Shown one piece after another: positions 1 through 64,000 of a stretch of 64,000 nt of DNA. The stretch covers positions 1 to 64,000 of the forward strand of contig CBFDEM010000042.1 in NCBI GenBank assembly GCA_965603825.1, in the 5' to 3' direction. Positions within the stretch are counted from its first letter, which is position 1. Every line of letters starts with the position of its first letter. The translations under genes were made by a program, and so were the position numbers. The DNA comes from Blepharisma stoltei ATCC 30299 (taxonomy: Eukaryota; Protista; Ciliophora). Under the pieces are notes generated by a model. The model saw only the letters and a program-made list of their open reading frames with translations, did no database searches and was not told where the DNA came from.

Positions 1-3000
1 TTACACCACCCTAACACCCTAACAACCCTAACACCCTAAACACCTAACACCCTACACCCTAACACCCTCACCACACCCTAACACCCTAACACCCCTAACA
101 CCCTAACACCCTAACACCCTAACACCCTAACACCCTAACACCCTAACACCCTAACACCCTAACACCCTAACACCCTAACACCCTAACACCCTAACACCCT
201 AACCCTAACACCCTAACACCCTAACACCCTAACACCCTAACCCTAACACCCTAACACCCTAACACCCTAACACCCTAACACCCTAACACCCTAACACCCA
301 CACCCTAACACCCTAACACCCTAACACCCTAACACCCTAACACCCTAACACCCTAACACCCTAACACCCTAACACCCAACACCCTAACACCCTAACACCC
401 TAACACCCTAACACCCTAACACCACACCCCTAACACCCTAACACCCTAACACCCTAACACCCTAACACCCTAACACCCTAACACCCTAACACCCTAACAC
501 CCTAACACCCTAACACCCTAACACCCTAACACCCTAACACCCTAACACCCTAACACCCTAACACCCTACACCCTAACACCCTAACACCCTAACACCCTAA
601 CACCCTAACACCCTAACACCCCTAACACCCTAACACCCTAACACCCTAACACCCTAACACCCTAACACCCTAACACCCTAACACCCTAACACCCTAACAC
701 CCTAACACCCTAACACCCTAACACCCTAACACCACCCTAACACCCTAACACCCTAACACCCTAACACCCTAACACCCTAACACCCTAACACCCCTAACAC
801 CCTAACACCCTAACACCCTAACACCCTAACACCCTAACACCCTAACACCCTAACACCCTAACACCCTACACCCTAACACCCTAACACCCCACACCCTAAC
901 ACCCTAACACCCCCCTAACACCCTAACACCCTAACACCCTAACACCCTAACACCCTAACACCCTAACACCCTAACACCCTAACACCCTAACACCCCCTAA
1001 CACCCAAACACCCTAACACCCTAACACCCTAACACCCTAACACCCTAACACCCTAACACCCTAACACCCTAACACCCTAACACCCTAACACCCTAACACC
1101 CTAACACCCCTAACACCCTAACACCCTAACACCCCTAACACCCTAACACCCCTAACACCCTAACACCCTAACACCCTAACACCCTAACACCCTAACACCC
1201 TACACCCACCCCCCTAACACCCTAACACCCTAACACCCTACACCCACACCCTAACACCCTAACACCCACACCCTAACACCCTAACACCCTAACACCCTAA
1301 CACCCTAACACCCTAACACCCTAACCACCCTAACACCCTAACACCCTAACACCCTAACACCCTAACACCCTAACACCCTAACACCCTAACACCCTAACAC
1401 CCTAACACCCTAACACCCTAACACCCTAACACCCTAACACCCTAACACCCTAACACCCTAACACCCAAACACCCTAACACCCTAACACCCTAACACCCTA
1501 ACACCCTAACACCCTAACACCCTAACACCCTAACACCCTAACACCCTAACACCCTAACACCCTAACACCCTAACACCCTAACACCCTAACACCCTAACAC
1601 CCTAACACCCTAACACCCTAACACCCTAACACCCTAACACCCTAACACCCTAACACCCTAACACCCTAACACCCTAACACCCTAACACCCTAACACCCTA
1701 ACACCCTAACACCCTAACACCCTAACACCCTAACACCCTAACACCCTAACACCCTAACACCCTAACACCCTAACACCCTAACACCCTAACACCCCTAACA
1801 CCCTAACACCCTAACACCCTAACACCCTAACACCCTAACACCCTAACACCCTAACACCCTAACACCCTAACACCCTAACACCCTAACACCCTAACACCCT
1901 AACACCCTAACACCCTAACACCCTAACACCCTAACACCCTAACACCCTAACACCACCCTAACACCCTAACACCCTAACACCCTAACACCCTAACACCCAA
2001 ACACCCTAACACCCTAACACCCTAACACCCTAACACCCTAACACCCTAACACCCTAACACCCTAACACCCTAACACCCTAACACCCTAACACCCTAACAC
2101 CCAACACCCTAACACCCTAACACCCCTAACACCCTAACCACCCTAACACCCTAACACCCTAACACCCTACACCCTAACACCCTAACACCCTAACACCCTA
2201 ACACCCTAACACCCTAACACCCTAACACCCTAACACCCTAACACCCTAACACCCTAACACCCTAACACCCTAACACCCTAACACCCTAACACCCTAACAC
2301 CCTAACACCCTAACACCCTAACACCCTAACACCCTAACACCCTAACACCCTAACACCCTAACACCCTAACACCCTAACACCCTAACACCCTAACACCCTA
2401 ACACCCTAACACCCCTAACACCCTAACACCCTAACACCCTAACACCCTAACACCCTAACACCCTAACACCCTAACACCCTAACACCCTAACACCCTAACA
2501 CCCTAACACCCTAACACCCTAACACCCTAACACCCTAACACCCTAACACCCTAACACCCTAACACCCTAACACCCTAACACCCTAACACCCTAACACCCT
2601 AACACCCTAACACCCTAACACCCTAACACCCTAACACCCTAACACCCTAACACCCTAACACCCTAACACCCTAACACCCTAACACCCTAACACCCTAACA
2701 CCTAACACCCTAACACCCTAACACCCTAACACCCTAACACCCTAACACCCTAACACCTAACCCCTAACACCCTAACACCCTAACACCCTAACACCCTAAC
2801 ACCCTAACACCCTAACACCCTAACACCCTAACACCCTAACACCCTAACACCCTAACACCCTAACACCCTAACACCCTAACACCCTAACACCCTAACACCC
2901 TAACACCCTAACACCCTAACACCCTAACACCCTAACACCCTAACACCCTAACACCCTAACACCCTAACACCCTAACACCCTAACACCCTAACACCCTAAC

Positions 3001-3877
3001 ACCCTAACACCCTAACACCCTAACACCCTAACACCCTAACACCCTAACACCCTAACACCCTAACACCCTAACACCCTAACACCCTAACACCCTAACACCC
3101 TAACACCCTAACACCCTAACACCCTAACACCCTAACACCCTAACACCCTAACACCCTAACACCCTAACACCCTAACACCCTAACACCCTAACACCTAACA
3201 CCCTAACACCCTAACACCCTAACACCCTAACACCCTAACACCCTAACACCCTAACACCCTAACACCCTAACACCCTAACACCCTAACACCCTAACACCCT
3301 AACACCCTAACACCCTAACACCCTAACACCCTAACACCCTAACACCCTAACACCCTAACACCCTAACACCCTAACACCCTAACACCCTAACACCCTAACA
3401 CCCTAACACCCTAACACCCTAACACCCTAACACCCTAACACCCTAACACCCTAACACCCTAACACCCTAACACCCTAACACCCTAACACCCTAACACCCT
3501 AACACCCTAACACCCTAACACCCTAACACCCTAACACCCTAACACCCTAACACCCTAACACCCTAACACCCTAACACCCTAACACCCTAACACCCTAACA
3601 CCCTAACACCCTAACACCCTAACACCCTAACACCCCTAACACCCTAACACCCTAACACCCTAACACCCTAACACCCTAACACCCTAACACCCTAACACCC
3701 TAACACCCTAACACCCTAACACCCTAACACCCTAACACCCTAACACCCTAACACCCTAACACCCTAACACCCTAACACCCTAACACCCTAACACCCTAAC
3801 ACCCTAACACCCTAACACCCTAACACCCTAACACCCTAACACCCTAAACACCCTAACACCCTAACACCCTAACACCC
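1..3877 (+). repeat. Telomere, (CCCTAACA)n C-rich strand; chromosome end
   Basis: About 480 tandem copies of the 8-mer CCCTAACA from base 1, with occasional variant units. This is the telomere repeat known from heterotrich ciliates (Stentor, Blepharisma). Confidence 0.97.
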
Positions 3878-4393
3878 AATTATAATCAAATATAACTATT
3901 GAATTGGAATTTTTACTTTTTATAGTAAAATTCTGAATTTATCACAAAGAAAATTAAAATGCTAAATTTCTGGCACAATTTATAAAAATTGCTTTTTTCC
4001 AAATTCCTTTTATTAATTATATTATAAATTGCTCTGCCTCTCATCAGCTAGTCTATATTATCGTTTAAAATTGATTTATAGTCAGCAATATTTTTGTGTT
4101 GAGAATAAAATTTCTCTTACTAGTTGTACAGAAGCCGGTCTAAAGCAAAATATATGCTCTCTTAAAAGCACGAAAAACAAAAATTTTAGAATACCTTTTT
4201 GCAATTTCCAAGTTAAAGAGGAAGTCAGCAAAAAGTTTTGGAATATCAAGAAATCTGCTATAAAAATACTAAATACTAATTAAAAGGTAAAAATACATAA
4301 AAACATTAATTAGCCTTATTCCATTTTCTCCATAGGTTACACAATTGAAATTTTAAACGTTTTCTTTTTTTAACAGCTCTTATTCATAAGTGA

Positions 4394-4972
4394 TTAGCTA
4401 TTAATAAAATTGCTTTTCTTATCAGAGGTTTTATTTCGTAAAGCCTCATCACTACTATCTTCTTCCTCTTCTTCCTCCCTGACTTTTTTGTTCAATCCAA
4501 CATAAACCGCTGCCTTTATAAATTTTACAGTCATAGGTGGCTTTTCTGGAGATTCTTCACTAAAAACACTTTCAAAGTTATTTCAAGCTTGTTTTTCTGA
4601 CTGCACTGAATTTCCAATGGTTTCAATAGCTCCATGCTGCATCAGCAGCTTCTTCATTTCTTCATTCTTTAGAAAAATTGCTAATTTTAAAGGTGATTCA
4701 TTATGCTAATTTATGCTTACAGCATCAAGAACATTAATATCACAGCCTGCAGTAATCAATTCTTCCGCAAAGACTTGGTTATTGAATCAAACAGCTAAAT
4801 GGAGAAGAGTCCATTTGTTCTGATTATTTTATACAGTTTCTATCTCCAGGTTTAAGTCAGCCTCGTTAAGTCTGATGGACTGTTTTTTTCTGATGGCTTC
4901 AACTAATTCATAAATCTGAATATAAACTACCCGCTTATCATTTTTTGAAGGTCCTCTGTGCATGTTCCCCAT
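4394..4972 (-). CDS. Small ankyrin-repeat protein with N-terminal MG (possible myristoylation); 3-4 micro-introns; missed by ORF track
   Basis: ATG at 4972. 15-nt GT..AG introns at 4916-4930, 4820-4834 and 4706-4720, plus a probable in-frame one at 4514-4528. Spliced product: MGNMHRGPSKNDKR/IYELVEAIRKK...LNLEIET/NKWTLLHLAVW(TGA)FNNQVFAEELITAGCDINVLDA/HNESPLKLAIFLKNEEMKKLLMQHGA..., TAA at 4394-4396. TLLHLAV..L+..G.D+N is the ankyrin consensus. Confidence 0.85.
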
Positions 4973-21581: not shown

Positions 21582-21656
21582 GTCAGAGGCCAGGACTCGA
21601 ACCTGGGACCTATCGGCCTGAACGACAATATGCTCTACCAACTGAGCTACCTCTGA
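21582..21656 (-). ncRNA. tRNA-like gene A (75 nt) with aberrant anticodon arm
   Basis: TCAGAGG-TA-GCTC-AGTTGGTA-GAGC-ATATTGTCGTTCAGGCCGATA-GGTC-CCAGG-TTCGAGT-CCTGG-CCTCTGA-C. Perfect acceptor, D and T arms, intact A and B boxes, downstream T-run terminator. The anticodon region is 2-3 nt too long. Confidence 0.85.
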
Positions 21657-21723
21657 TATCAAAGATTAATAATTCAAGATGAATTTATTTATAAAATCTC
21701 ACCAAATAAAAAATGCAAAAGGG

Positions 21724-21795
21724 GTCAGAGGCTGGGTTTCGATCCCAGTTTTCCGGGTCCGAAATTCCGGCGTGCATCCATTATACTACCTCTGA
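21724..21795 (-). ncRNA. tRNA-like gene B (72 nt) with aberrant anticodon arm and initiator-type T loop
   Basis: TCAGAGG-TA-GTAT-AATGGAT-GCAC-G-CCGG-AATTTCGGAC-CCGG-AAAA-CTGGG-ATCGAAA-CCCAG-CCTCTGA-C followed by CCCTTTT. Acceptor stem identical to gene A. Confidence 0.8.
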
Positions 21796-33476: not shown

Positions 33477-33547
33477 ATTTTTGAAATAAAAGAAATCTTG
33501 TGTTTTAATCTGATTTTATAAATAAAAGCTTTATAGGTTTTCAAGCT

Positions 33548-33587
33548 GACTGTTTGGCCGAGTGGTCTAAGGCGCCAGCTTCAGGCG

Positions 33588-33622
<35 letters not shown>

Positions 33623-33627
33623 AGTCA
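33548..33627 (+). tRNA. tRNA-Leu(CAG)
   Basis: GACTGTT acceptor, GCC/GGC D stem, CCAGC-TT CAG GC-GCTGG anticodon arm (CAG at 33582-33584), long variable arm, GTGGG-TTCAAAT-CCCAC, A73, T-run terminator. Confidence 0.95.
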
Positions 33628-34307
33628 TTTTTTATTTTTTAAGAATTTCGAAGTTAAAGTGAAAAATATGTAGAAGATTAACGGTTTGGGAGATAGCGTA
33701 TTACTACTTCAACTAGCTTCATGTTTTGATTGTGATTAAAGATTGTCATTTTTAAAATTATATTTTATATAAGCTATGAAAATTATAATTGATCTTATAT
33801 GTATTTGATTTGGCAATACTTTTTATAAAAATGTGTATATGCTTTTATTAATTAATGTCCATGTGCATTTATAAATAATAAAGTTGCGAGAGTAAAATAG
33901 CTCTAAAAAATCTATATTTACAGAAATGATTTTAGAAGTTAAAAGCGAGTATTTTCTAGCATTAATGCCAATGATGAGGTATAAAACTGCCAATTAAGTG
34001 AAGCAAGAAAATAATTAAATGCTGAACTCCCTATAAGAGTATGCTATTCCGAAGAATTTAGAAATTTCATTTAGCAACAAAAGATTAACTCAAGAAGTAA
34101 AGCTTGAAATAATCGAATTGCAAGAAGTCTATTTATTCAGGTTTTGATAATGAAAAGAATAGCATTAGTCACATAGATATAAGTCTTGAACCATAAATTC
34201 AAAGATTACACAAATCTTAAATAAAAATTAGCTAATCACTTCAGCTAATAACAAAAATGATAATTTTTATTGTCTAACTCTTAGGGTCGATATTGAAATT
34301 GGTTATC

Positions 34308-52402: not shown

Positions 52403-52475
52403 TCAGGGGTAGCTCAGTGGTAGAGCGTTCGACCAGCAAGACGATCGGCCCCAGGTTCAAATCCTGGTCCCTGAC
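52403..52475 (+). ncRNA. tRNA-like gene C (73 nt) with aberrant anticodon arm
   Basis: TCAGGGG-TA-GCTC-AGTGGTA-GAGC-GTTCGACCAGCAAGACGATC-GGCC-CCAGG-TTCAAAT-CCTGG-TCCCTGA-C, then TATTTTT. D and T arms are nearly identical to gene A; the loop contains no U at all (no U33). Confidence 0.85.
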
Positions 52476-54132: not shown

Positions 54133-54939
54133 ATGAATACGATAAGATGCTATGAGCCAGCGTGTGACGGTGAGGCTGAGCTTTTATGTAACTGCACTTC
54201 ACCTGTGACTTATTCTTGTGAAAATCATATGCTGAAGCATTATAAATCAAGCAGCCCTCATAATTTTAGCTCAATCTTTGTAGAGCCTGTTGAAGGCACA
54301 AAAGAAGCAATTCTTCAGTTTCTTGCAGAAGAAAAGTCAAAAATTGAAAAAATTAAGGCAAATATAATCGAATCCTTTGCTCAAACTCTTAGATTATTAA
54401 GCAGAAGAAAAAAAGCTTTGGAATGCTTGCAAGAAGCTATCAGAATTGATCCAAATGATGCTGATGCACACAATTGAATAGGAGTTATTTTAGGAAATGA
54501 AAATAAATGTGAAGAAGCAGTAAAATATCACAACAAAGCAATTAGAATCAACCCAAACTGTTCACTTTATTATAATGATAAAGGATATGCTCTATATAGA
54601 TTAGGCAGAATAGAAAAAGCTATTGATTATTTAGAAAAAGCTATCAGAATTGATCCAAATAATGCTAATTCAATCAATAACATAGGAAATATCTTAACAA
54701 ATGAAAAGAGATATGAAGAAGGAGTAAAACAATTTAGCGAGGCAATTCGAATCAACCCTAACTCTGCAAATTATTATTATAATAAAGGATATGCTCTTAA
54801 AGAGTTAGGCAGAAGAGAAGAAGCTATGGAATCCTATAAAGAAGCTATCAGAATTGATCCAAATTATCCTGTTTCATACAGTTGCAAAGAATTTATCTCA
54901 GAAAATGAAAAGAGACAGTTAAAGTGCACTTTATTTTAG
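54133..54939 (+). CDS. Zn-finger (B-box-like)-TPR protein, short paralog (268 aa, ~5 TPR) ending in CaaX (CTLF)
   Basis: TGA 54475 read as Trp; N-terminal C-x4-C-x7-C-x-C-x7-C-x2-H-x3-H; TPR repeats; ends ...QLKCTLF-TAG. Confidence 0.82.
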
Positions 54940-55029
54940 TTAATCTTATCAAGAATAAAGATATATCAATAGAGTTCGTACTTTTTAGCACATTATATAT
55001 AGATTTATTTAATATAAAATAAAAAAAAT

Positions 55030-55600
55030 CGCTAGTCCTAGGCATGGGAAGCGTTTTTTCTATATATTGTTCTAGCCTTTCTATATTAAGTCTAAGCTTC
55101 TCACATTTATTTCGGGAATATTCACGTTTTTAGTTGAGTTTTTTTTTCAAGGGTATTAGCTTTTAGGAATAATGTATGAGCTATAGTAAAATATATAATT
55201 GCTGTTTTGCTTCCTCTTTAGATTTTGCTTTCTTTTATTCGTTTATTTGATTTTAAAAGTAAAAAATTAGCATCGCGGTCAGAAAGCCCTCTGAATCAGT
55301 GTCAACTTGATTTAAGACGACTCAGCCCATGCTTCTTTATGAGAAGGTGTTTGGCTTAATTCCAGTTTAAGCTTGGAGATATTATTATTTCTTCATATCA
55401 GCAGCTGCTGATCTTTCATTTAATTCAATTTGAATTTCTTGTTTAGTGGCTTGTTTTCTTTAAATTGGCTTTCTAAAAATTACTGATTTCTACAAACCAT
55501 TTGATTATAAAATTCTGCGTCTGTTTTTTGTCTATATAATTGAGCAATGTGCGATAGCAGAAAATCTGATAGTCACTTGGATCAATTTTGATTGCTTCAA
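55030..55600 (-). pseudogene. Decayed gene fragment X, copy 1 (inverted relative to copy 2 at 60314-60776)
   Basis: Colinear similarity to the reverse complement of 60314-60776, e.g. ttagcatcgcggtcagaaag vs ttagcatcgtggtcagaaag and gctagtcctaggcatgg vs gctagtccctggcatgg. Contains a residual EAIKIDPSD / KAIELDPSD TPR-like peptide. Confidence 0.6.
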
Positions 55601-55666
55601 TCGATCTATAATTTTTTTCTGGGTAAATCTCTAATTTTTTTTAAAAACAATTATATATAAATTGTA

Positions 55667-56065
55667 TAGCCAATTTTCTATTGAGTGAAGAATGAAGAAG
55701 CTGCTGATGCAGTATGGAGCTAATGAAACAATTGAAAATTAGTGCAGTCAGAGAAACACCTGTAAAAGTATTTTTAGTGAAGAATTTTCAGAAAAGCCAC
55801 CTATGACTGTAAAATTTATAAAGGTGACGATTTATGTTGGATTGAACAAAAAAATCAAGTAGGAGGAAATAGGGGAAAAGATAGAAGTAATGAGGCTTTA
55901 CGAATAAAATCTCTAATAAGAAAAGTATTTTAGTAATAGCTAATCACTTATGAACAAGAGCTTTAAAGGAAAGAAAACGTTTAAATTTCAATTTTGTAGC
56001 CTATATGAAGAATTTGGAATCGGGCTAATTCGTGATTTTACGTATTTTACCTTTTAATTAGTATA
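55667..56065 (+). pseudogene. Truncated copy of the 3' half and 3' flank of the ankyrin gene at 4394-4972
   Basis: Aligns to the reverse complement of ~4274-4685 (gaagaagctgctgatgcag..., cagaaaagccacctatgactgtaaaatttataaagg, tagctaatcacttatgaa), with indels and no 5' exons. Confidence 0.85.
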
Positions 56066-56241
56066 AGTTTGCAATGTAAAAGTAATAAATTTTGTTAAAT
56101 GTTATATTAATAAATCTATATATTATATACTCATAAAAACATCTTTTAATGTTGATAAGATTAAGCATTTATAAATTTTTGCTTTGTTAAGGCATTAATA
56201 GTTTTTCTCTTCTGCCTAACTTATGTATGAAAAGTGTGTTT

Positions 56242-59200
56242 TTATTTTCCGAAAGAGCTCTGTGTCTTTTGTGCATAAGCATAATTTTCAAAATATATTA
56301 TAGCTTCTTTATAGTATTCAATAGCTTCTTCTGTTCTGCCTAATAATCTAAGAGCATTTCCTTTATTTGAATAATAAAATGCACAGTTTGGGTTGATTCT
56401 GATTGCATCGTTGTAATGTTTCACTGCTTCTTCATATCTATTTTCATTAAAGAAGATAAGCCCTATTCAATTGTATGCAAATGAATAATTTGGATCAATT
56501 CTGATAGCTTCTTTATAGCATTCCATAGCTTCTCTGTTCAGCCTAACTCATATAGAGCATCTCCTTTATTTGCATAAAAATGTGCATAGTTTAGGTTGAT
56601 TCTAATTGCATCGTTGTAATATTTCACTGCTTCTTCATATCTCTTTTCATCATAGAAGAGAAGTCCTATGCTATTGTCTGCATTAGCATTATTTGGATCA
56701 ATTCTGATAGCTTTTTTATAGCATTCCATAGCTTCTTCTCTTCTGCCTAATAATCTAAGAGCAGTTCCTTTATTTGAATAATAAATTGCAGAGTTTGAGT
56801 CGGTTCTAATTGCATCGTTAAAATGTTTTAATGCTTCTTCATATCTCCTTTCTTTAAAGAAGATATTTCCTATGCAATTGTAAGCATATGCATAATATGG
56901 ATCAATTCTGATAGTTTCTTTATAGCATTCCATAGCTTCTTTTCTTCTGCCTAATTCATCTAGAGCAACTCCTTTATTTGAATAATAAAGTGTTTTGTTT
57001 GGGTTTATTCTAATTGCATTGTTATAATATTTTATTGATTCTTCATATCTCTTTTTATTATAAAAGAGAAGTCCTATGCCATTGTATGCATTAGCATAAT
57101 ATGGATCAATTCTGATAGCTTCTTTATAGCATTCCATAGCTTCTTCTCTTCTGCCTAAATCTCTAAGAGCAGCTCCTTTTTTTGAATAATATTTTGCATC
57201 GTTTGGGTCGATTCTAATTGGATCGTTATAATGTTTCGCTGCTTCTTCATATCTATTTTCATAACAGAAGATATCTCCTATTTCATTGTATGCAGATAAA
57301 TTATTTGGATCAATTCTGATAGCTTCTTTATAGCATCCCATAGCTTCTTCTCTTCTGCCTAATAATCTAAGAGCAGTTCCTTTATTTGAATAATAAACCG
57401 CAGAGTTTGAGTCGATTCTAATTGCATCGTTAAAATGTTTTAATGCTTCTTCATATCTCCTTTCTTTAAAGAAGATATTTCCTATGCAATTGTAAGCATA
57501 TGCATAATATGGATCAATTCTGATAGTTTCTTTATAGCATTCCATAGCTTCTTTTCTTCTGCCTAATTCATCTAGAGCAACTCCTTTATTTGAATAATAA
57601 AGTGCATTGTTTGGGTTGATTCTAATTGAATCGTTGTAATGTTGTACTGCTTCTTCATATCTCTTTTCATTATAGAAGATATCTCCTATATCATTGTATG
57701 CAGATGAATTATTTGGATCAATTTTGATAGCTTTTTTATAGCATTCCATAGCTTCTCCTCTTCTGCCTAACTCTATAAGAGCATTTCCTTTTTTTGAATA
57801 ATAAAGTGCACAGTTTGGGTTGATTCTGATTGCATCGTTGTAATGCTTTGCTGCTTCTTCATATCTCTTTTCGTTTTCTAAGATAATTCCTATTCTATTG
57901 TATGTTATAGAGTTATTTGGATCAATTCTGATAGCTTCTTTATAGCATTTCATAGCTTCTTTTTTTCTGCCTAATTCATCTAGAGCAACTCCTTTATTTA
58001 AATAAAGTGTAGAGTTTGGGTTGATTCTAATTGCATCGTTAAAATATTTTATTGCTTTTTCATATCTCCTTTTATCTCAGAAGATAAACCCTAAGCCATT
58101 GTACGCAGATACATCATTTGGATCAATTCTGATAGCTTCTTTATAGCATTTCATAGCTTGTCCTCTTCTGCTTAACTCTCTAAGAGCATTTCCTTTATTT
58201 GAATAATAAAGTGATTCGTTTTGGTTGATTCTAATTGCATTGCTATAATATTTTATTGCTTCTTCATATCTATTTTCATTTGCAAAGATAAATCCTATGC
58301 TATTGTATGCATAAGCATAATTTGGATCAATTCTGACAGCTTCTTTATAGCATTCCAGAGCTTCTTCTCTCCTGCCTAACTCTCTAAGGGCATATCCTTT
58401 ATTTTTATAATAAAGCGCTTTGTTTGGGTTGATTCTAATTGCATCGTTGTAATGTTTCACTGCTTCTTCATATCTATTTTCATTATAAAAGAGAAATTCT
58501 ATCCCTTTTTGTCCATGAGCATAATTTGGATCTATTCTAGTAGCTTCTTGTGAGCATTCCATAGCTTCTTCTCTTCTACCTAACTCATATAGAGCATCTC
58601 CTTTATTTGAATAATAAGCTGCACAGTTTGGGTTGATTCTAATTGCATCGTTGTAATGTTTCACTGCTTCTTCATATCTTTTTTCATCATAGAAGAGAAG
58701 TCCTATACCATTATCTGCATTATCATAATTTGGATCAATTCTGATAGCTTCTTTATAACATTCAATAGCTTCTTCTCTTTTACCTAACTCTCTAAGAGCA
58801 TTTCCAATATTTGAATAATAAATTGCAGAATTTGGGTTGATTCTAATTGCGTCGTTGTAATGTTGTGCTGCTTCTTCGTATCTCTTTTCATTAAAGAAGA
58901 TAACTCCTATGCCATTGTATGCAGATGCATTATTTGGATCAATTCTGATAGCTTCTTTATAGCATTCCATAGCTTCTTCTCTTCTGCTTAATTCATATAA
59001 AGCATCTCCTTTATTTGAATAATAAAGTGCATTGTTTGGGTTGATTCTAATTGCGTCGTTGCAATGTTGTACTGCTTCTTCATATCTCTTTTCATTAAAG
59101 AAGATAATTCCTATGCCATTGTATGCATATGCATTATTTGGATCAATTCTGATAGCTTCTTTGTAGCATTCCATAGCTTCTTCTCTTCTGTCTAACTCGC

Positions 59201-60200
59201 CTAGAGCAGCTCCTTTATTTGAATAATATTTTGCATCGTATTGGTTGATTCTAATTGCATCGTTGTAGTGCTTCACTGCTTCTTCATATCTCTTTTCATC
59301 ATAGAAGATAAATCCTATTTCGTTGTATGTATAAGCATTATTTGGATCAAGTCTGATAGCTTCTTTATAGCATTTCAGAGCTTCTTCTCTCTTGCCTAAA
59401 TGCCTAAGAGCAGCTCCTTTATTTGAATAATAAGTTGCACAGCTTGGGTTGATTCTAATTGCGTCGTTGTACTGTTGTACTGCTTCTTCATATCTATTTT
59501 CATTTAAGAAGATAGCCCCTATGCCATTGTATGCATCAGCATAATTTGGATCAATTCTGATAGCTTCTTTATACTCGCTTAATACTTGCTGCAACGTATC
59601 CTCTTTATTTTCAAAGTTCGTATGAATGTTTTTCAATTCAAAATTGATTTCATATGGAGTAACTTTGGACTTTTCTTCGTGAAAGCTCTTAATAACTGCA
59701 TCAATTTGTTTATTTAATTCAGATAATAACCCGATATTATTATTTGATATTACTGTAAAAATTGTTTTAGCTTTTTCAACAGCTATATTTGTCTGCAAGA
59801 CTAACAAATTTAAGGCTGAATCATACCTTATATACGAGTGTTTTTGTGCTTGCCTTACTTTTTCGGCGTAGCTGCCAATTTCTAAAGAATAAGAGTTGAT
59901 TTCTTTTACAAGTTGTTTAAGGATATTGTTACAACCAGAAAGAGTTTGAGTAAAGGATATGATTATATTTGCCTTAATTTTGTCAATTTTTGATTTTTTT
60001 TCTGAAAGAAAGTGAAGAATTGCTTCTCCTGTGCCTTTAAAAGGCTCTACAACAATTTTGCTGACATGATGAGGATTGTCGCTAGATTCTATATGCTCCA
60101 GAATATGATTTGTGCAAATATAAGTCGCAGGTGAAGTGCAATTGCATAAAAGCTTAGCCTCACTATCACACGTTGGCTCATAGCATCTTATCGTGCTCAT
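56242..60200 (-). CDS. Zn-finger/coiled-coil/TPR protein, long paralog (~32 TPR); apparent 1-nt frameshift near 56533
   Basis: ORFs 58077..60200 and 56538..57953 are in frame through TGA. After GGC TGA ACA one base is missing relative to the repeat consensus, giving TAG at 56463-56465, while the TPR frame continues to TAA 56242. Confidence 0.85.
56270..59575 (-). repeat. Coding tandem repeat, 204-bp unit (two alternating 34-aa TPRs)
   Basis: The anchors tttggatcaattctgatagcttc and gggttgattctaattgcatcgtt recur every 204 nt. Confidence 0.93.
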
Positions 60201-60313
60201 ATTTTACAATTATATTACAGTTAATTTAATCAGCTAAATGCATTATCGATGAAATATGTAGATGCTTAGATATTTACACAAAAAGAAATTATAAAGCGAT
60301 GAGTGTTTAATTA

Positions 60314-60776
60314 AGCAATTGAACTTGATCCAAGTGACTCTCTGCTTTTCTGCTATTGCACATATGCTCAATCATTTAAGACAAGAAACTGAAACAGAAT
60401 TTTACGAGTAAATTGGGGATCTGCAAACAAGAATCAAATGGCATAATAATTTTTATAAACTGAAATTTTTGCCAAAGACCTTCTCTTAAAGAAGCATAGG
60501 CTAATTTGTCTCAAATCCAGTTGACACTTTGCCTGATTCAGAGACCTTTCTGACCACGATGCTAAATTTGTACTTTTACAATCAAATAAATGACTAAAAA
60601 AAAGCAAATCCAAAGAGGAAACAAAGCAGCAACTATCACTTTCACTGCAGATCATACATTATTTTAAAAGTTAATACCCTTGAAGGAGAGCTTGAAAAAA
60701 ATGAATGTGAGAAGCTTAGATAAAGAAATGCTAAAATCTCATATAGATAGAACGCCTGCCATGCCAGGGACTAGCG
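60314..60776 (+). pseudogene. Decayed gene fragment X, copy 2
   Basis: Inverted homolog of 55030-55600, with multiple indels and stops. Confidence 0.6.
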
Positions 60777-61341
60777 TGTTTTTAAGTTTGCAGAGAAAAA
60801 TTTAAAAATTAGAAGACAAAAACTATTTGTAGAGCAAGAATTGAATGATATTTTGTTCTGATTTTAGAACTGGAGAAAGGCTTTGAAGCAAATCCTATCT
60901 TGAACGGGGTGCTGCTGCGAAATTTAGGACTCTTCTAAAAATGAGCTTCCATATTAATTTTAAAAACGGGAGTTGCTGCACTAAAAGTTCTTACACATTT
61001 ATAAATAAGATATTGTTAGAAATTATTATTTAAAAGGATTCACATATTTCAGGTGGAATCATTAGAAATCTTCTCCAATTTGACTCTCAAAACATTCATT
61101 GCATAAAAATTCTATAATTCATCAATTATTGTAATAAATCTATTTATTTTCTTCAAAATCAAAGGTTTATTTATAAAAATTTTCTCATGCATTTATTATC
61201 ATAGCTCAAAGCTTTCTGTTCAACATCAAAATTTATAAATTGATAAAAGACTTCCTCTGATTTATAGAATCTATAATAAGAATGAGACGATCGGCAAGCA
61301 CATATTTGATATTGAAAAAACCTGCATTATCATTGCATATA

Positions 61342-61720
61342 TAATTAGCAATTTTTCTGAAGAATGAAGAAATGAAGAAGCTGCTAATACAGCATGGAGA
61401 TAATGAAACAATTGGAAATTTAGTGCAGTCAGAGAAACAACCTTGAAAAACCATCTATGACTGTAAAATTTATAAAGGTGACGATTTATGCTGGATTGAA
61501 CAAAAAAATCAAGAAGGTAGAAGTAGGAGAAAAGATAGTAGTGATGAGGCTGTACAAAATAAACCTCTGATAAGAATAGCAGTTTTAATAATAGCTAACC
61601 ACTTATGAATAGGAGATGTTAGGGAAAGAAAACGTTTAAAATTTCAATTTTGTAACCTATACGGAGAAAATGGAATCAGGCTAATTCATATTTTTACGTA
61701 TTTTTATCTTTTAATTAGTG
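61342..61720 (+). pseudogene. Second truncated copy of the ankyrin gene 3' half and flank
   Basis: aattagcaatttttctgaagaatgaagaaatgaagaagctgcta... matches the reverse complement of ~4274-4686, with an internal deletion. It lies directly 3' of the third TPR gene, as the 55667 copy does for the second. Confidence 0.85.
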
Positions 61721-61898
61721 TAAATTTGTATTGTAAAAGTAATAAATTTGCTTTACTGTTATATTTAAAAAATCTATTTATTATATGCTCATAAAAACAT
61801 CTTTTAATGCTTGATAAGATTAAGCATTATAAATCTTTGCTTTATTAAGACAGTCCGTACCTTCTTCTCTTCTGCCTAACTTATCTAGAGCAGCTCCT

Positions 61899-64000
61899 TT
61901 ATTTGAATAATAAAGCGCACTTTTCATTTTTTGAGATAAGTGCTATGCCTTTGTGTGCATTAGCAGTATTTGGATCAATTCTAATAGCTTCTTTATAGCA
62001 TTCCAGAGCTTCTTCTCTCCTGCCTAACTCATATAGAGCAGCTCCTTTATTTGAATAATAAAGTGCACAGTTTGGGATGATTCTAATTGCATCGTTGTAA
62101 TGTTTTACTGCTTCTTCATATCTCTCTTCATTATAGAAAATATCTCCTATTTTATTGTATGTTTCAGCATCATTTGGATCGATTCTGATAGCTTCTTTAT
62201 AGCATTCCAGAGCTTCTTCTCTCCTACCTAACTCATCTAGAGCGTCTCCTTTATTTGAATAATAACTTGCACAGTTTGGGTTGATTCTAATTGCATCGCT
62301 AAAATATTTTATTGCTTCTTCATATCTATTTTCATTATAGAAGATATCTCCTATTTTATTGCATTGATAAGCATCATTTGGATCAATTCTGATAGCTTCT
62401 TGTAAGCATTCCAGAGCTTCTTCTCTCCTGCCTAACTCTCTAAGAGCAGCTCCTTTATTTGAATAATAAAGTGCTTTGTTTGGATTGATTCTAATTGCAT
62501 CGTTGTAATGTTTTACTGCTTCTTCATATCTCTTTTCATTATAGAAGATACCTCCTATTTGGTTGTATGCCGAAGCATCATTTGAATCAATTCTGATACC
62601 TTCTTTATAGCATTCCAGAGCTTCTTCTCTCTTGCCTAACAAACTAAGAGCAGCTCCTTTATTTGAATAATAAAGTGCTTTGTTTGGGTTGAATCTAATT
62701 GCATCTTTGTAATGTTTTACTGCTTCTTTATATCTCTTTTTATTATAAAAGATATCTCCTATTTGATTGTATGCCGAAGCATCATTTGGATCAATTCTGA
62801 TAGCTTCTTTATAGCATTCCAGAGCTTCTTCTCTTCTGCCTAACTTATCTAGAGCAGCTCCTTTATTTGAATAATAACTTGCACAGTTTGGGTTGATTCT
62901 ATTTGCATCGTTGTAATGTTTTACTGCTTCTCTATATCTCTTTTCATTATAGAAGATATCTCCTATTTCATTGTATGCCGAAGCATCATTTGGATCGATT
63001 CTTATAGCTTCTTGTAAGCATTCTAGAGCTTCTTCTCTTCTGCCTAACTTATCTAGAACATATCCTTTATTTGAATAATAAAGTGCTTTGTTTGGGTTGA
63101 TTCTAATTGCATCGTTGTAATGTTTTACTGCTTCTTCATATCTATTTTCATTATAGAAGATATCTCCTAATTGATTGTATGCCGAACCATCATTTAGATC
63201 GATTCTGATAGCTTCTTGTAAGCATTCCAGGGCTTCTTCTCCTCTACCTAACTCATCTAGAGCATCTCCTTTATTTAAATAATAAAGTGCTTTGCTTGGG
63301 TTGATTCTAATTGCATCGTTGTAATGTTTTACTGCTTCTTCATATCTCTTTTCATTATACAAGATGACTCCTATTTCATTGTATGGAGATGCATTATTTG
63401 GATCGATTCTGATAGCTTCTTGTAAGCATTCCAAAGCTTTTTCTCTCCTACCTAACTTATCTAGAGCAGCTCCTTTATTTGAATAATAAAGTGCACAGTT
63501 TGGGTTGATTCTAATTGCATCGTTGTAATGTATTACTGCTTCTGCATATCTCTTTTCATTATAGAAGATGACTCCTATTTCATTGTATGGAGATGCATTA
63601 TTTGGATCGATTCTGATAGCTTCTTGTAAGCATTCCAGAGCTTCTTCTCTCCTGCCTAACTTATCTAGAGCAGCTCCTTTATTTTTAAAAAATAATGCTT
63701 TGTTTGGGTTGATTCTGATTGCATCGTTGTAATGTTTTACTCCTTCTTCATATCTCTTTTCATTATAGAAGATGACTCCTATTTCATTGTATGCAGATGC
63801 ATTATTTGAATTGATTCTGATAACTTCTTTATAGCATTTCAGAGCTTCTTCTCTCCTGCCTAACTCATATAGAGCAGCTCTTTTATTTGAATAATAAAGT
63901 GCTTTGTTTGGATTGATTCTAATTGCATCGTTGTAATGTTTTACTGCTTCTTCATATCTCTTTTCATTATAGAAGATATCTCCTATTTGATTGTATGCCG
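61899..64000 (-). CDS. TPR-array protein, third paralog (5'-partial, >=20 TPR in window)
   Basis: The frame appears open from the window edge to TAA 61899; the ORF-track start at 63434 is only an internal TTG. Same 204-bp two-TPR unit. Confidence 0.9.
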   Translation of the reverse strand, partial: AYNQIGDIFYNEKRYEEAVKHYNDAIRINPNKALYYSNKRAALYELGRREEALKCYKEVIRINSNNASAYNEIGVIFYNEKRYEEGVKHYNDAIRINPNKALFFKNKGAALDKLGRREEALECLQEAIRIDPNNASPYNEIGVIFYNEKRYAEAVIHYNDAIRINPNCALYYSNKGAALDKLGRREKALECLQEAIRIDPNNASPYNEIGVILYNEKRYEEAVKHYNDAIRINPSKALYYLNKGDALDELGRGEEALECLQEAIRIDLNDGSAYNQLGDIFYNENRYEEAVKHYNDAIRINPNKALYYSNKGYVLDKLGRREEALECLQEAIRIDPNDASAYNEIGDIFYNEKRYREAVKHYNDANRINPNCASYYSNKGAALDKLGRREEALECYKEAIRIDPNDASAYNQIGDIFYNKKRYKEAVKHYKDAIRFNPNKALYYSNKGAALSLLGKREEALECYKEGIRIDSNDASAYNQIGGIFYNEKRYEEAVKHYNDAIRINPNKALYYSNKGAALRELGRREEALECLQEAIRIDPNDAYQCNKIGDIFYNENRYEEAIKYFSDAIRINPNCASYYSNKGDALDELGRREEALECYKEAIRIDPNDAETYNKIGDIFYNEERYEEAVKHYNDAIRIIPNCALYYSNKGAALYELGRREEALECYKEAIRIDPNTANAHKGIALISKNEKCALLFK

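Follow-up and report, generated by a model that had tools for sequence, protein, structure and literature searches.

We analysed positions 1 to 64,000 of contig CBFDEM010000042.1 from the ciliate Blepharisma stoltei ATCC 30299 (assembly GCA_965603825.1), hereafter referred to as the window, with the focus on a gene cluster that extends from position 54,133 to the right-hand edge and beyond. The genes of this cluster encode a zinc finger, a helical stalk and tandem arrays of tetratricopeptide repeats (TPRs). On balance, we regard it as probable that they form a subtelomeric cluster of a large, lineage-restricted B. stoltei family, the products of which are groove-diversified TPR binders on a common oligomerising head. 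The groove residues at positions 2, 5 or 6, 9, 12, 13 and 34 of the TPR unit are likely to change amino acids two to four times faster than silent sites, as indicated by most of the tests applied. Judged by their sequence, the arrays look like a diversified repertoire of binding proteins.

The contig (C42) comprises 71,566 bases, of which the window covers the first 64 kb, and CCCTAACA octamer telomeres cap both ends. A first-pass annotation of the window, made from the letters alone, had reported three paralogues built of a 204-bp unit of two TPRs. Tandem Repeats Finder arrays together with Pfam TPR matches bear out these three genes, termed A, B and C, and we add a fourth copy, D, a telomere-cut pseudogene located just beyond the window. 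The copies of the family share one layout, in which a Cys/His zinc finger with eight ligands is followed by a helical stalk of ~150 residues and the TPR array. In the long TPR frame the codons TGG, TAA and TAG are absent and TGA occurs at positions where a residue is expected, indicating that TGA encodes Trp; the ciliate host proposed earlier is thereby corroborated. All gene models were read with TGA as Trp and required no splicing, and no introns were seen in the TPR arrays. The features of the cluster are as follows.

54133-54939, plus strand: gene A, 268 amino acids, with zinc finger, ~45 stalk residues and ~5 TPR units
54396-54915, plus strand: array A, Tandem Repeats Finder period of 204 bp, 2.5 copies, 77% matches
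60200-56463, minus strand: gene B, open frame of 1245 amino acids with TGA read as Trp
60066-60200, minus strand: zinc finger of gene B, residues 1-45, ligands C6, C11, C19, C21, C29, H32, H36 and H44, predicted B-box-like fold
59589-60065, minus strand: helical stalk of gene B, residues 46-204
56272-59573, minus strand: array B, Tandem Repeats Finder period of 204 bp, 16.2 copies, 83% matches
56586-59540, minus strand: in-frame part of array B, 29 intact 34-codon units with types A and B alternating
56688-57605, minus strand: internal duplication in array B, three-unit block 57300-57605 repeated at 56688-56993 with unit identities of 99%, 99% and 96%
56272-56585, minus strand: 3′ end of array B, with a 1-nt deletion near 56540, by which one unit is disrupted and two further units are shifted out of frame
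65477-61899, minus strand: gene C, 1192 amino acids, 28 TPR units and a short cap, crossing the window edge
61899-64000, minus strand: in-window part of gene C, 20 of the 28 TPR units and the C-terminal cap
61968-63998, minus strand: array C within the window, Tandem Repeats Finder period of 204 bp, 10 copies, 90% matches, the most homogenised array
C42:~67846-66690, minus strand: copy D, starting at about codon 76 of the head and abutting the telomere at 67849, with a frameshift and stops

The arrays thus comprise ~5 (A), ~32 (B) and 28 (C) TPR units. The order of the previously estimated repeat numbers (~5, ~32 and at least 20) holds, with the corrections that array B consists of 29 intact units, one broken unit and two units out of frame, and that array C has 28 units plus the cap. 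The open frame of gene B terminates at the TAG codon 56463-56465. Gene C contains neither internal stops nor TGA codons and is the sole fully clean local copy; an exact look-up of its product in the protein collection gave no match. The product of gene A, which has lost most of the helical stalk and kept the finger, is identical to a protein of the public B. stoltei proteome; an exact look-up of this product returned no contig.

All Pfam results reported here stem from scans of gene A, residues 1-707 of gene B, the in-window part of gene C and the head alone. TPR_1, TPR_11 and TPR_2 matched the arrays, each query with 14-20 units and at E values between 1e-99 and 1e-159, and the unit consensus carries Y4, I/K7, G8, F/L11, A20, Y24, A27 and P32 at the signature positions of TPRs. 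Two 34-residue unit types, A and B, alternate and thereby generate the 204-bp two-unit period. The closest solved chain overall is an engineered consensus TPR and the closest natural one the TPR domain of human OGT (E 1.5e-48); SPINDLY, CDC27 and HOP are further close relatives of known structure.

The variation between the units is concentrated at few positions. In the 32 + 32 units of genes A-C, the amino acid entropy of type A was highest at positions 6, 9, 2, 34 and 12 (2.1-2.9 bits, at most 10 residues each) and that of type B at positions 9, 2, 12, 13 and 34 (1.7-2.5 bits), with values below 1.3 bits at most remaining positions. Position 5 of type B was likewise variable in a larger set of 157 clean 34-codon units, which were collected with two profile models from this cluster and from its nearest paralogous counterparts on seven further contigs. 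Each unit retains a conserved Asn, which is located at position 6 in type B, the Asn position of consensus TPRs and OGT, and at position 5 in type A. The complementary site is variable in each type, that is, position 5 in type B and position 6 in type A. The variable set of the first-pass annotation (positions 2, 6, 9, 12, 13 and 34) is mostly retained, except that type B keeps Asn6 and varies at position 5, and that position 13 varies mainly in type B. At the nucleotide level, unit-to-unit identity within arrays amounts to 0.56-0.73 at the variable codons, 0.86-0.92 at the other codons and 0.81-0.89 over whole units. The description of the scaffold DNA as almost invariant was overstated, as it is only 86-92% identical between units.

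Among TPRs at large, positions 2, 5, 9, 12, 13, 33 and 34, which are located on the concave face, are the most variable, and HOP grips its peptide with positions 2, 5, 6, 9, 12 and 13 (Magliery and Regan, PMC1261162). The variable positions of the Blepharisma units match this general concave set, which supports their mapping to the binding groove; comparison of the entropy profile with the published set agrees with the earlier statement that they line the concave TPR face.

Selection was tested on two-unit super-repeats from the window (n = 30) or from all clusters (n = 66), in which 12 variable codons were compared with the 56 other codons. By pairwise Nei-Gojobori counting, the proportion of non-synonymous differences (pN) was 0.42-0.47 at the variable codons and 0.11 elsewhere, with an overall proportion of synonymous differences (pS) of 0.19-0.22. 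Parsimony on the tree assigned 172 non-synonymous and 20 synonymous changes to the variable codons, and 180 and 80, respectively, to the 56 others. The resulting ratio of non-synonymous to synonymous rates (dN/dS, or omega) at the variable codons was 2.2-2.6 relative to their own silent changes (P = 2e-4 to 7e-6) and 2.7-3.1 relative to the scaffold silent rate, while the scaffold yielded 0.59-0.68. We further employed a custom likelihood model of the Muse-Gaut type (MG94), which allows for A+T and transition bias, shares relative branch lengths and provides a separate rate multiplier for the variable class. With this model omega at the variable codons reached 2.4-3.8 with a silent-rate multiplier of 1.0-1.4 (twice the log-likelihood difference, 16-57 versus omega = 1), and the scaffold omega was 0.43-0.58. 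A concave set defined from the literature, with the conserved Asn positions included, was used so that the sites were not chosen post hoc; it gave an omega of 2.15 (p = 0.0018) for the window and of 1.73 (p = 0.0002) for all clusters. Targeted hypermutation or a mutational hot spot at the groove codons is unlikely, since their silent rate is not raised.

Taken together, the scaffold codons are under purifying selection and the groove codons are fully released from constraint, both of which are solid observations, and diversifying selection at the groove codons is likely, short of proof. The dN/dS check on the repeat units that had been suggested with the first-pass annotation turned out in favour of selected variation in the counting and MG94 tests (2.2-3.8 at groove codons, 0.4-0.6 in the scaffold), with the exception of the GY94 fit considered below.

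The arrays and the genes that carry them are subject to rapid turnover. Identity among the units of array C amounts to 0.88-0.89, as compared to 0.82-0.83 with those of array B, and the nearest neighbour of 27 of the 28 C units lies within array C, indicative of an expansion or homogenisation specific to this array. Within array B, the duplicated three-unit block shows few differences between its copies, most of which change the amino acid. Moreover, the genes are located in duplicated cassettes, in which flanks and an upstream element are repeated as listed below, no strand being assigned to these elements.

55791-56224: 3′ flank of cassette B, 86% identical to 61445-61884
61445-61884: 3′ flank of cassette C, duplicate of 55791-56224
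60456-60845: upstream element of gene B, which recurs upstream of gene C at C42:65730-66140 and, inverted, after gene A at 55023-55522

The duplicated cassettes, together with the truncated, frameshifted and telomere-cut copies, indicate birth-and-death evolution beside the chromosome end. Gene cassettes duplicate in tandem, arrays lengthen, shorten and partly homogenise as their 102- and 204-bp units recombine unequally or convert one another, and copies die through frameshift, internal deletion or telomere truncation. With respect to the proposed reshuffling by unequal crossover, duplication and homogenisation are evident from these data, whereas combinatorial reshuffling would be a conclusion drawn from one genome. 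As a side observation, copy D starts directly beside the telomere repeats and looks like a gene cut by telomere addition.

The motif C-x4-C-x7-C-x-C-x7-C-x2-H-x3-H and the adjoining helical region, noted before in genes A and B, were confirmed, with a further invariant His seven residues on and with the stalk mostly missing from gene A. The ligands C6, C11, C19, C21, C29, H32, H36 and H44 are common to fifteen paralogous heads that are 34-60% identical, all eight are invariant or nearly so in an alignment of 101 sequences, and the spacing of the motif is retained in 133 of 159 database relatives. The protein N-terminus lies five residues ahead of this single eight-ligand finger. Pfam did not match the head even at E = 10, zf-B_box and RING included, and sequence profile searches of the PDB with the head returned only chance-level matches and no B-box chain.

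AlphaFold prediction of the 204-residue head with 15 sequences left the finger poorly defined, with a predicted local distance difference test score (pLDDT) of ~50, and placed stalk helices at residues 55-126 (72 residues, pLDDT >90) and 137-177 (41 residues). A fold search with this whole head was uninformative, because the long helix dominates. Prediction of the finger alone with the 101-sequence alignment reached a mean pLDDT of 83, and the best Foldseek matches of this model comprise the B-boxes of MID2, PML B1, CONSTANS, TRIM28, TRIM39, TRIM29, MuRF1 and TRIM54, found among ZZ domains, with E values of 0.9-9; for PML B1 the template modelling scores were 0.57/0.65 and the root-mean-square deviation (rmsd) 2.4. 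A search with VIA-align, which does not depend on Foldseek, yielded Z 5.6 for the COL2 B-box, Z 5.5 for the USP domain chain of CYLD, at an rmsd of 6.2, and Z 5.0 for TRIM28 B-box1, at an rmsd of 1.6 over 42 of 43 residues. ZFYVE19, TRIM5alpha B-box2 and PML B1 also scored high, and RING, U-box and ZZ domains scored slightly below the B-boxes. These models weakly suggest a two-zinc cross-brace domain that would be most B-box-like, at scores usual for any small domain.

The stalk of gene B is compatible with one heptad register, in which hydrophobic residues occupy 56% of the a/d positions versus 26% elsewhere, a value reached by 13 of 1000 shuffles. Its dominant periodicity of 3.6 residues is that of any amphipathic helix and does not distinguish a coiled coil. 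The structure prediction called for by the first-pass annotation hence provided a B-box-like finger and a long helix, albeit with weak match scores. The proposed likeness to the B-box/coiled-coil part of TRIM proteins stands insofar as B-boxes are the best, if weak, structural matches and the stalk is heptad-compatible, and fails insofar as neither a Pfam B-box nor a RING is present.

The head defines a large family. It matches at least 150 places in the B. stoltei genome, drawn from 303 candidates, which answers the earlier call for a family count. An exhaustive profile search with the head retrieved 264 representative clusters from a library of 1.84 billion proteins; a word-indexed protein search found no match, either with the head alone or within the 707-residue frame. 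Among ten representatives looked up, seven are from B. stoltei and three are on ENA or Logan contigs; two of these three contigs are an ENA metagenome scaffold and a contig of a Logan-assembled SRA run. The presence of relatives in environmental or other samples indicates that the head module exists outside the sequenced B. stoltei strain. On the ENA scaffold and the Logan contig, which are gene-dense and eukaryotic, the head relatives occur in fusion with WD40 or Kelch propellers. Of 74 representatives examined behind the head, 25 match Kelch, 6 TPR and 3 WD40 repeats, and one protein carries Kelch and TPR together.

The copies are enriched near chromosome ends. Within 20 kb of a contig end we found 38 of 146 copies (26%), as compared to 6.2% expected, where clustering inflates the nominal P value, and the 11 closest paralogues of gene B are all located at most 17.5 kb from a contig end. 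As an additional observation, many family matches elsewhere in the genome contain TAA or TAG stops.

The closest parallel to the repeat part is found in fungal NLR proteins with TPR, ANK or WD repeats, such as the Podospora HNWD family (Dyrka et al. 2014, PMC4986451). Both systems share tandem near-identical TPR units, differences in repeat number between paralogues, signs of concerted evolution and variable, apparently positively selected positions on the concave face. The unit identity of 0.81-0.89 and the groove omega of 2.2-3.8 in the counting and MG94 tests are those of an NLR-type repeat, the GY94 fit not being significant. In contrast to the fungal genes, the Blepharisma genes lack a NACHT/NB-ARC NTPase, a HET, lipase or other effector domain, and their head is a zinc finger with a stalk; the Pfam scans, which covered residues 1-707 of gene B and the in-window part of gene C besides gene A and the head, yielded TPR-type families alone, none of them in the head, and no NLR/STAND-type NACHT or NB-ARC domain. 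Furthermore, their units are 34-residue TPRs of the consensus or OGT type arranged in a two-unit super-repeat, the genes are adjacent to macronuclear telomeres, and one genome was compared. The likeness to fungal NLRs suggested earlier is accordingly confined to the repeat pattern described by Dyrka et al. (PMC4986451) and does not extend to a NOD domain.

The overall layout resembles that of TRIM/RBCC proteins: an N-terminal cross-brace finger, matched best, if weakly, by B-box structures, is followed by an extended helical stalk, the C-terminal binding domain differs among members (TPR, Kelch or WD40), and the family is large and fast-evolving. Unlike TRIM proteins, the Blepharisma proteins have no RING and hence no evident E3 ligase activity. 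They contain a single finger with the unusual spacing C-x4-C-x7-C-x-C-x7-C-x2-H-x3-H-x7-H, which is missed by the Pfam B-box model, and they end in solenoid or propeller repeats instead of PRY-SPRY; the coiled coil of the stalk is putative. In its workings the family parallels the repeat part of fungal NLRs and in its layout a TRIM protein devoid of the RING, but it belongs to neither group.

OGT, SPINDLY and the engineered consensus TPRs provide the closest solved sequences and share with the Blepharisma proteins long superhelical arrays and a concave-face Asn in every second unit. They differ in that the Blepharisma proteins possess no glycosyltransferase domain and have arrays of 28-32 units as compared to 13 in OGT, with units that are near-identical in DNA and differ mainly at the groove, and in that the genes are multicopy and subtelomeric. 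One paralogue had been automatically named after OGT/SPINDLY, an identity that we reject for want of the catalytic domain: Pfam found no glycosyltransferase (GT41), and the open frames end at most ~25 residues past the last TPR. Likewise, no protease domain was detected in the Pfam scans of the genes and the head. In another protist lineage, that of Ectocarpus, an expansion of TPR-repeat genes has likewise been proposed to encode recognition proteins that evolve fast, with candidate receptors of the NB-ARC-TPR and LRR types (Zambounis et al. 2012, PMC3341825). Those proteins contain an NB-ARC domain and diversify, according to the title of that study, by exon shuffling, while the Blepharisma arrays are without an NTPase and without visible introns.

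A scheme of how the proteins could work follows from these comparisons. The first module would be a B-box-type two-zinc cross-brace finger, the second a long amphipathic helical stalk that probably pairs or oligomerises, and the third a TPR superhelix of near-consensus, OGT-like units. Extended peptide segments are probably bound in the lumen of this superhelix, which is predicted to form four turns. The backbone of the peptide would be held by the conserved Asn residues, and specificity for its side chains would depend on the variable residues. The lumen of OGT accommodates unstructured peptides, the backbone of which is anchored by an Asn ladder, and neighbouring residues confer side-chain selectivity (PMC11145291). 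We infer peptide binding by analogy with this ladder and from the alignment of type-B Asn6 with the consensus-TPR Asn. As neither a signal peptide nor a membrane segment is evident, the proteins appear to be cytosolic. The family would in this way provide many specificities on a shared oligomerising head, and the sister branches with Kelch and WD40 propellers would do likewise.

Several observations weigh against such a selected repertoire. When IQ-TREE was run with GY94 and free branch lengths on the 12 variable codons alone, omega was 0.9-1.4 and indistinguishable from 1, with a scaffold omega of 0.30-0.42 that is clearly below 1. This fit is over-parameterised, with 57 free branch lengths for 12 codons, and serves as a sensitivity check; the disagreement nevertheless makes the case for omega >1 model-dependent. 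In addition, trees built from 204-nt recombining repeats break the single-tree assumption, and variable positions chosen post hoc were used in half of the tests. As TPRs at large also vary most at these positions (PMC1261162), the pattern alone is no proof of a recognition system. Gene C is the only fully intact local copy, as gene A is without most of the stalk, gene B is frameshifted near its 3′ end and copy D is a pseudogene. Finally, the B-box assignment comes with weak structural scores (Foldseek E 0.9-9, Z 5-5.6) and no sequence-level match.

If the proteins were scaffolds or substrate adaptors for endogenous partners, for instance in proteostasis, in building the cortex or cilia, or in recognition related to mating, the differences at the groove from unit to unit and from paralogue to paralogue would reflect subfunctionalisation to many self ligands. 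The closest solved relatives, OGT, SPINDLY, CDC27 and HOP, are indeed housekeeping TPR scaffolds, the Kelch and WD40 propellers of the sister branches are typical adaptor domains, and Pfam revealed no effector, NTPase or death-type domain. However, subtelomeric clustering, rapid birth and death, homogenisation within arrays and a non-synonymous excess at binding positions are atypical of housekeeping adaptors, and few relatives of the head are detectable outside Blepharisma. We consider such a function unlikely.

An immune-like or other conflict-driven role is a possibility. More specifically, the genes might constitute a TRIM-like, NOD-less intracellular recognition system, in which the B-box/coiled-coil head oligomerises once its diversified TPR, Kelch or WD40 sensor has captured a protein of foreign or non-self origin, and the repertoire is renewed by unequal recombination in the subtelomeric arrays. 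We put this forward as a speculative proposal with a low chance of being correct. Nothing points to the immune role envisaged by the first-pass annotation, and Pfam finds no NOD/STAND NTPase, RING or death-type effector domain. If true, the recognition system would represent, in a ciliate, the equivalent of the NLR repeats of fungi and the TRIM restriction factors of animals, independently assembled from different parts.

A young, decaying family, in which amplified near-identical TPR units drift and the groove varies as the least constrained surface with no repertoire being selected, would be in accord with the neutral GY94 estimate for the variable codons, with the general variability of the groove in TPRs, with the three of four local copies that are truncated, frameshifted or broken and with the TAA/TAG stops in many matches elsewhere. 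It is difficult to reconcile with a scaffold omega of 0.30-0.58 (p <1e-8 versus omega = 1), with frames of 1192 and 1245 codons that stay open at ~31% G+C and with groove codons that evolve above the neutral rate in most tests at an unraised silent rate. Moreover, the zinc ligands are invariant among paralogues that are just 20-60% identical. We therefore judge decay alone to be a rather improbable explanation. An assembly artefact, in which array lengths, unit order or the frameshift arose from assembling long repeats beside a telomere, is very improbable: the arrays do extend over 3-3.3 kb of 83-90% similar 204-bp units and the telomere tracts are unusually long at both ends (3.7-3.9 kb), but the units differ by 8-19% with unit-specific codons and are thus assemblable from HiFi reads, on which the published assembly is based (PMC9942806), the frames are open across >1100 codons, and the product of gene A is recorded identically on two public contigs.

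In the explanation that we favour, a lineage-restricted family of groove-diversified TPR binders, the cluster represents a concrete candidate system open to testing. Recognition repertoires of fungi (NLRs), plants and jawless vertebrates are characterised by families of near-identical repeats with selected variation of the binding face, and intracellular recognition and immunity are poorly understood in ciliates. The same evolutionary logic would here operate in a ciliate that branches early, and on another chassis, which consists of a B-box-like finger with a stalk, lacks NTPase and RING and is located next to telomeres. The arrays also provide a natural library of consensus-type TPR binders in which the specificity positions are already marked.

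The assembly analysed here comprises 41,464,486 bases in 64 contigs, in line with the macronuclear genome published for B. stoltei ATCC 30299, which was described as 41 Mb in 64 telomere-to-telomere contigs with UGA encoding Trp and CCCTAACA telomeres (PMC9942806). That paper makes no mention of TPR or subtelomeric families, and a description of the present gene family was found neither there nor in the open-access literature searched. Only ~64 kb of the contig, from ~3878 to ~67848, are unique sequence. The telomere tracts at 1-3877 and C42:67849-71566 contain ~455 and ~460 exact CCCTAACA units, respectively, and are thus unusually long. A piece of ~400 bp downstream of genes B and C (55667-56064 and 61343-61719) is 84-91% identical, in inverted orientation, to 4273-4686 beside the opposite telomere; on the minus strand, that sequence resembles the terminal part of an ankyrin repeat with a tail behind it. 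ARAGORN reported four tRNA-like genes in the window, at 21582-21656, 21722-21795, 33547-33628 and 52403-52475, two of which have odd anticodon loops ('ttcg' and 'gc') and two of which were assigned as Leu(cag).

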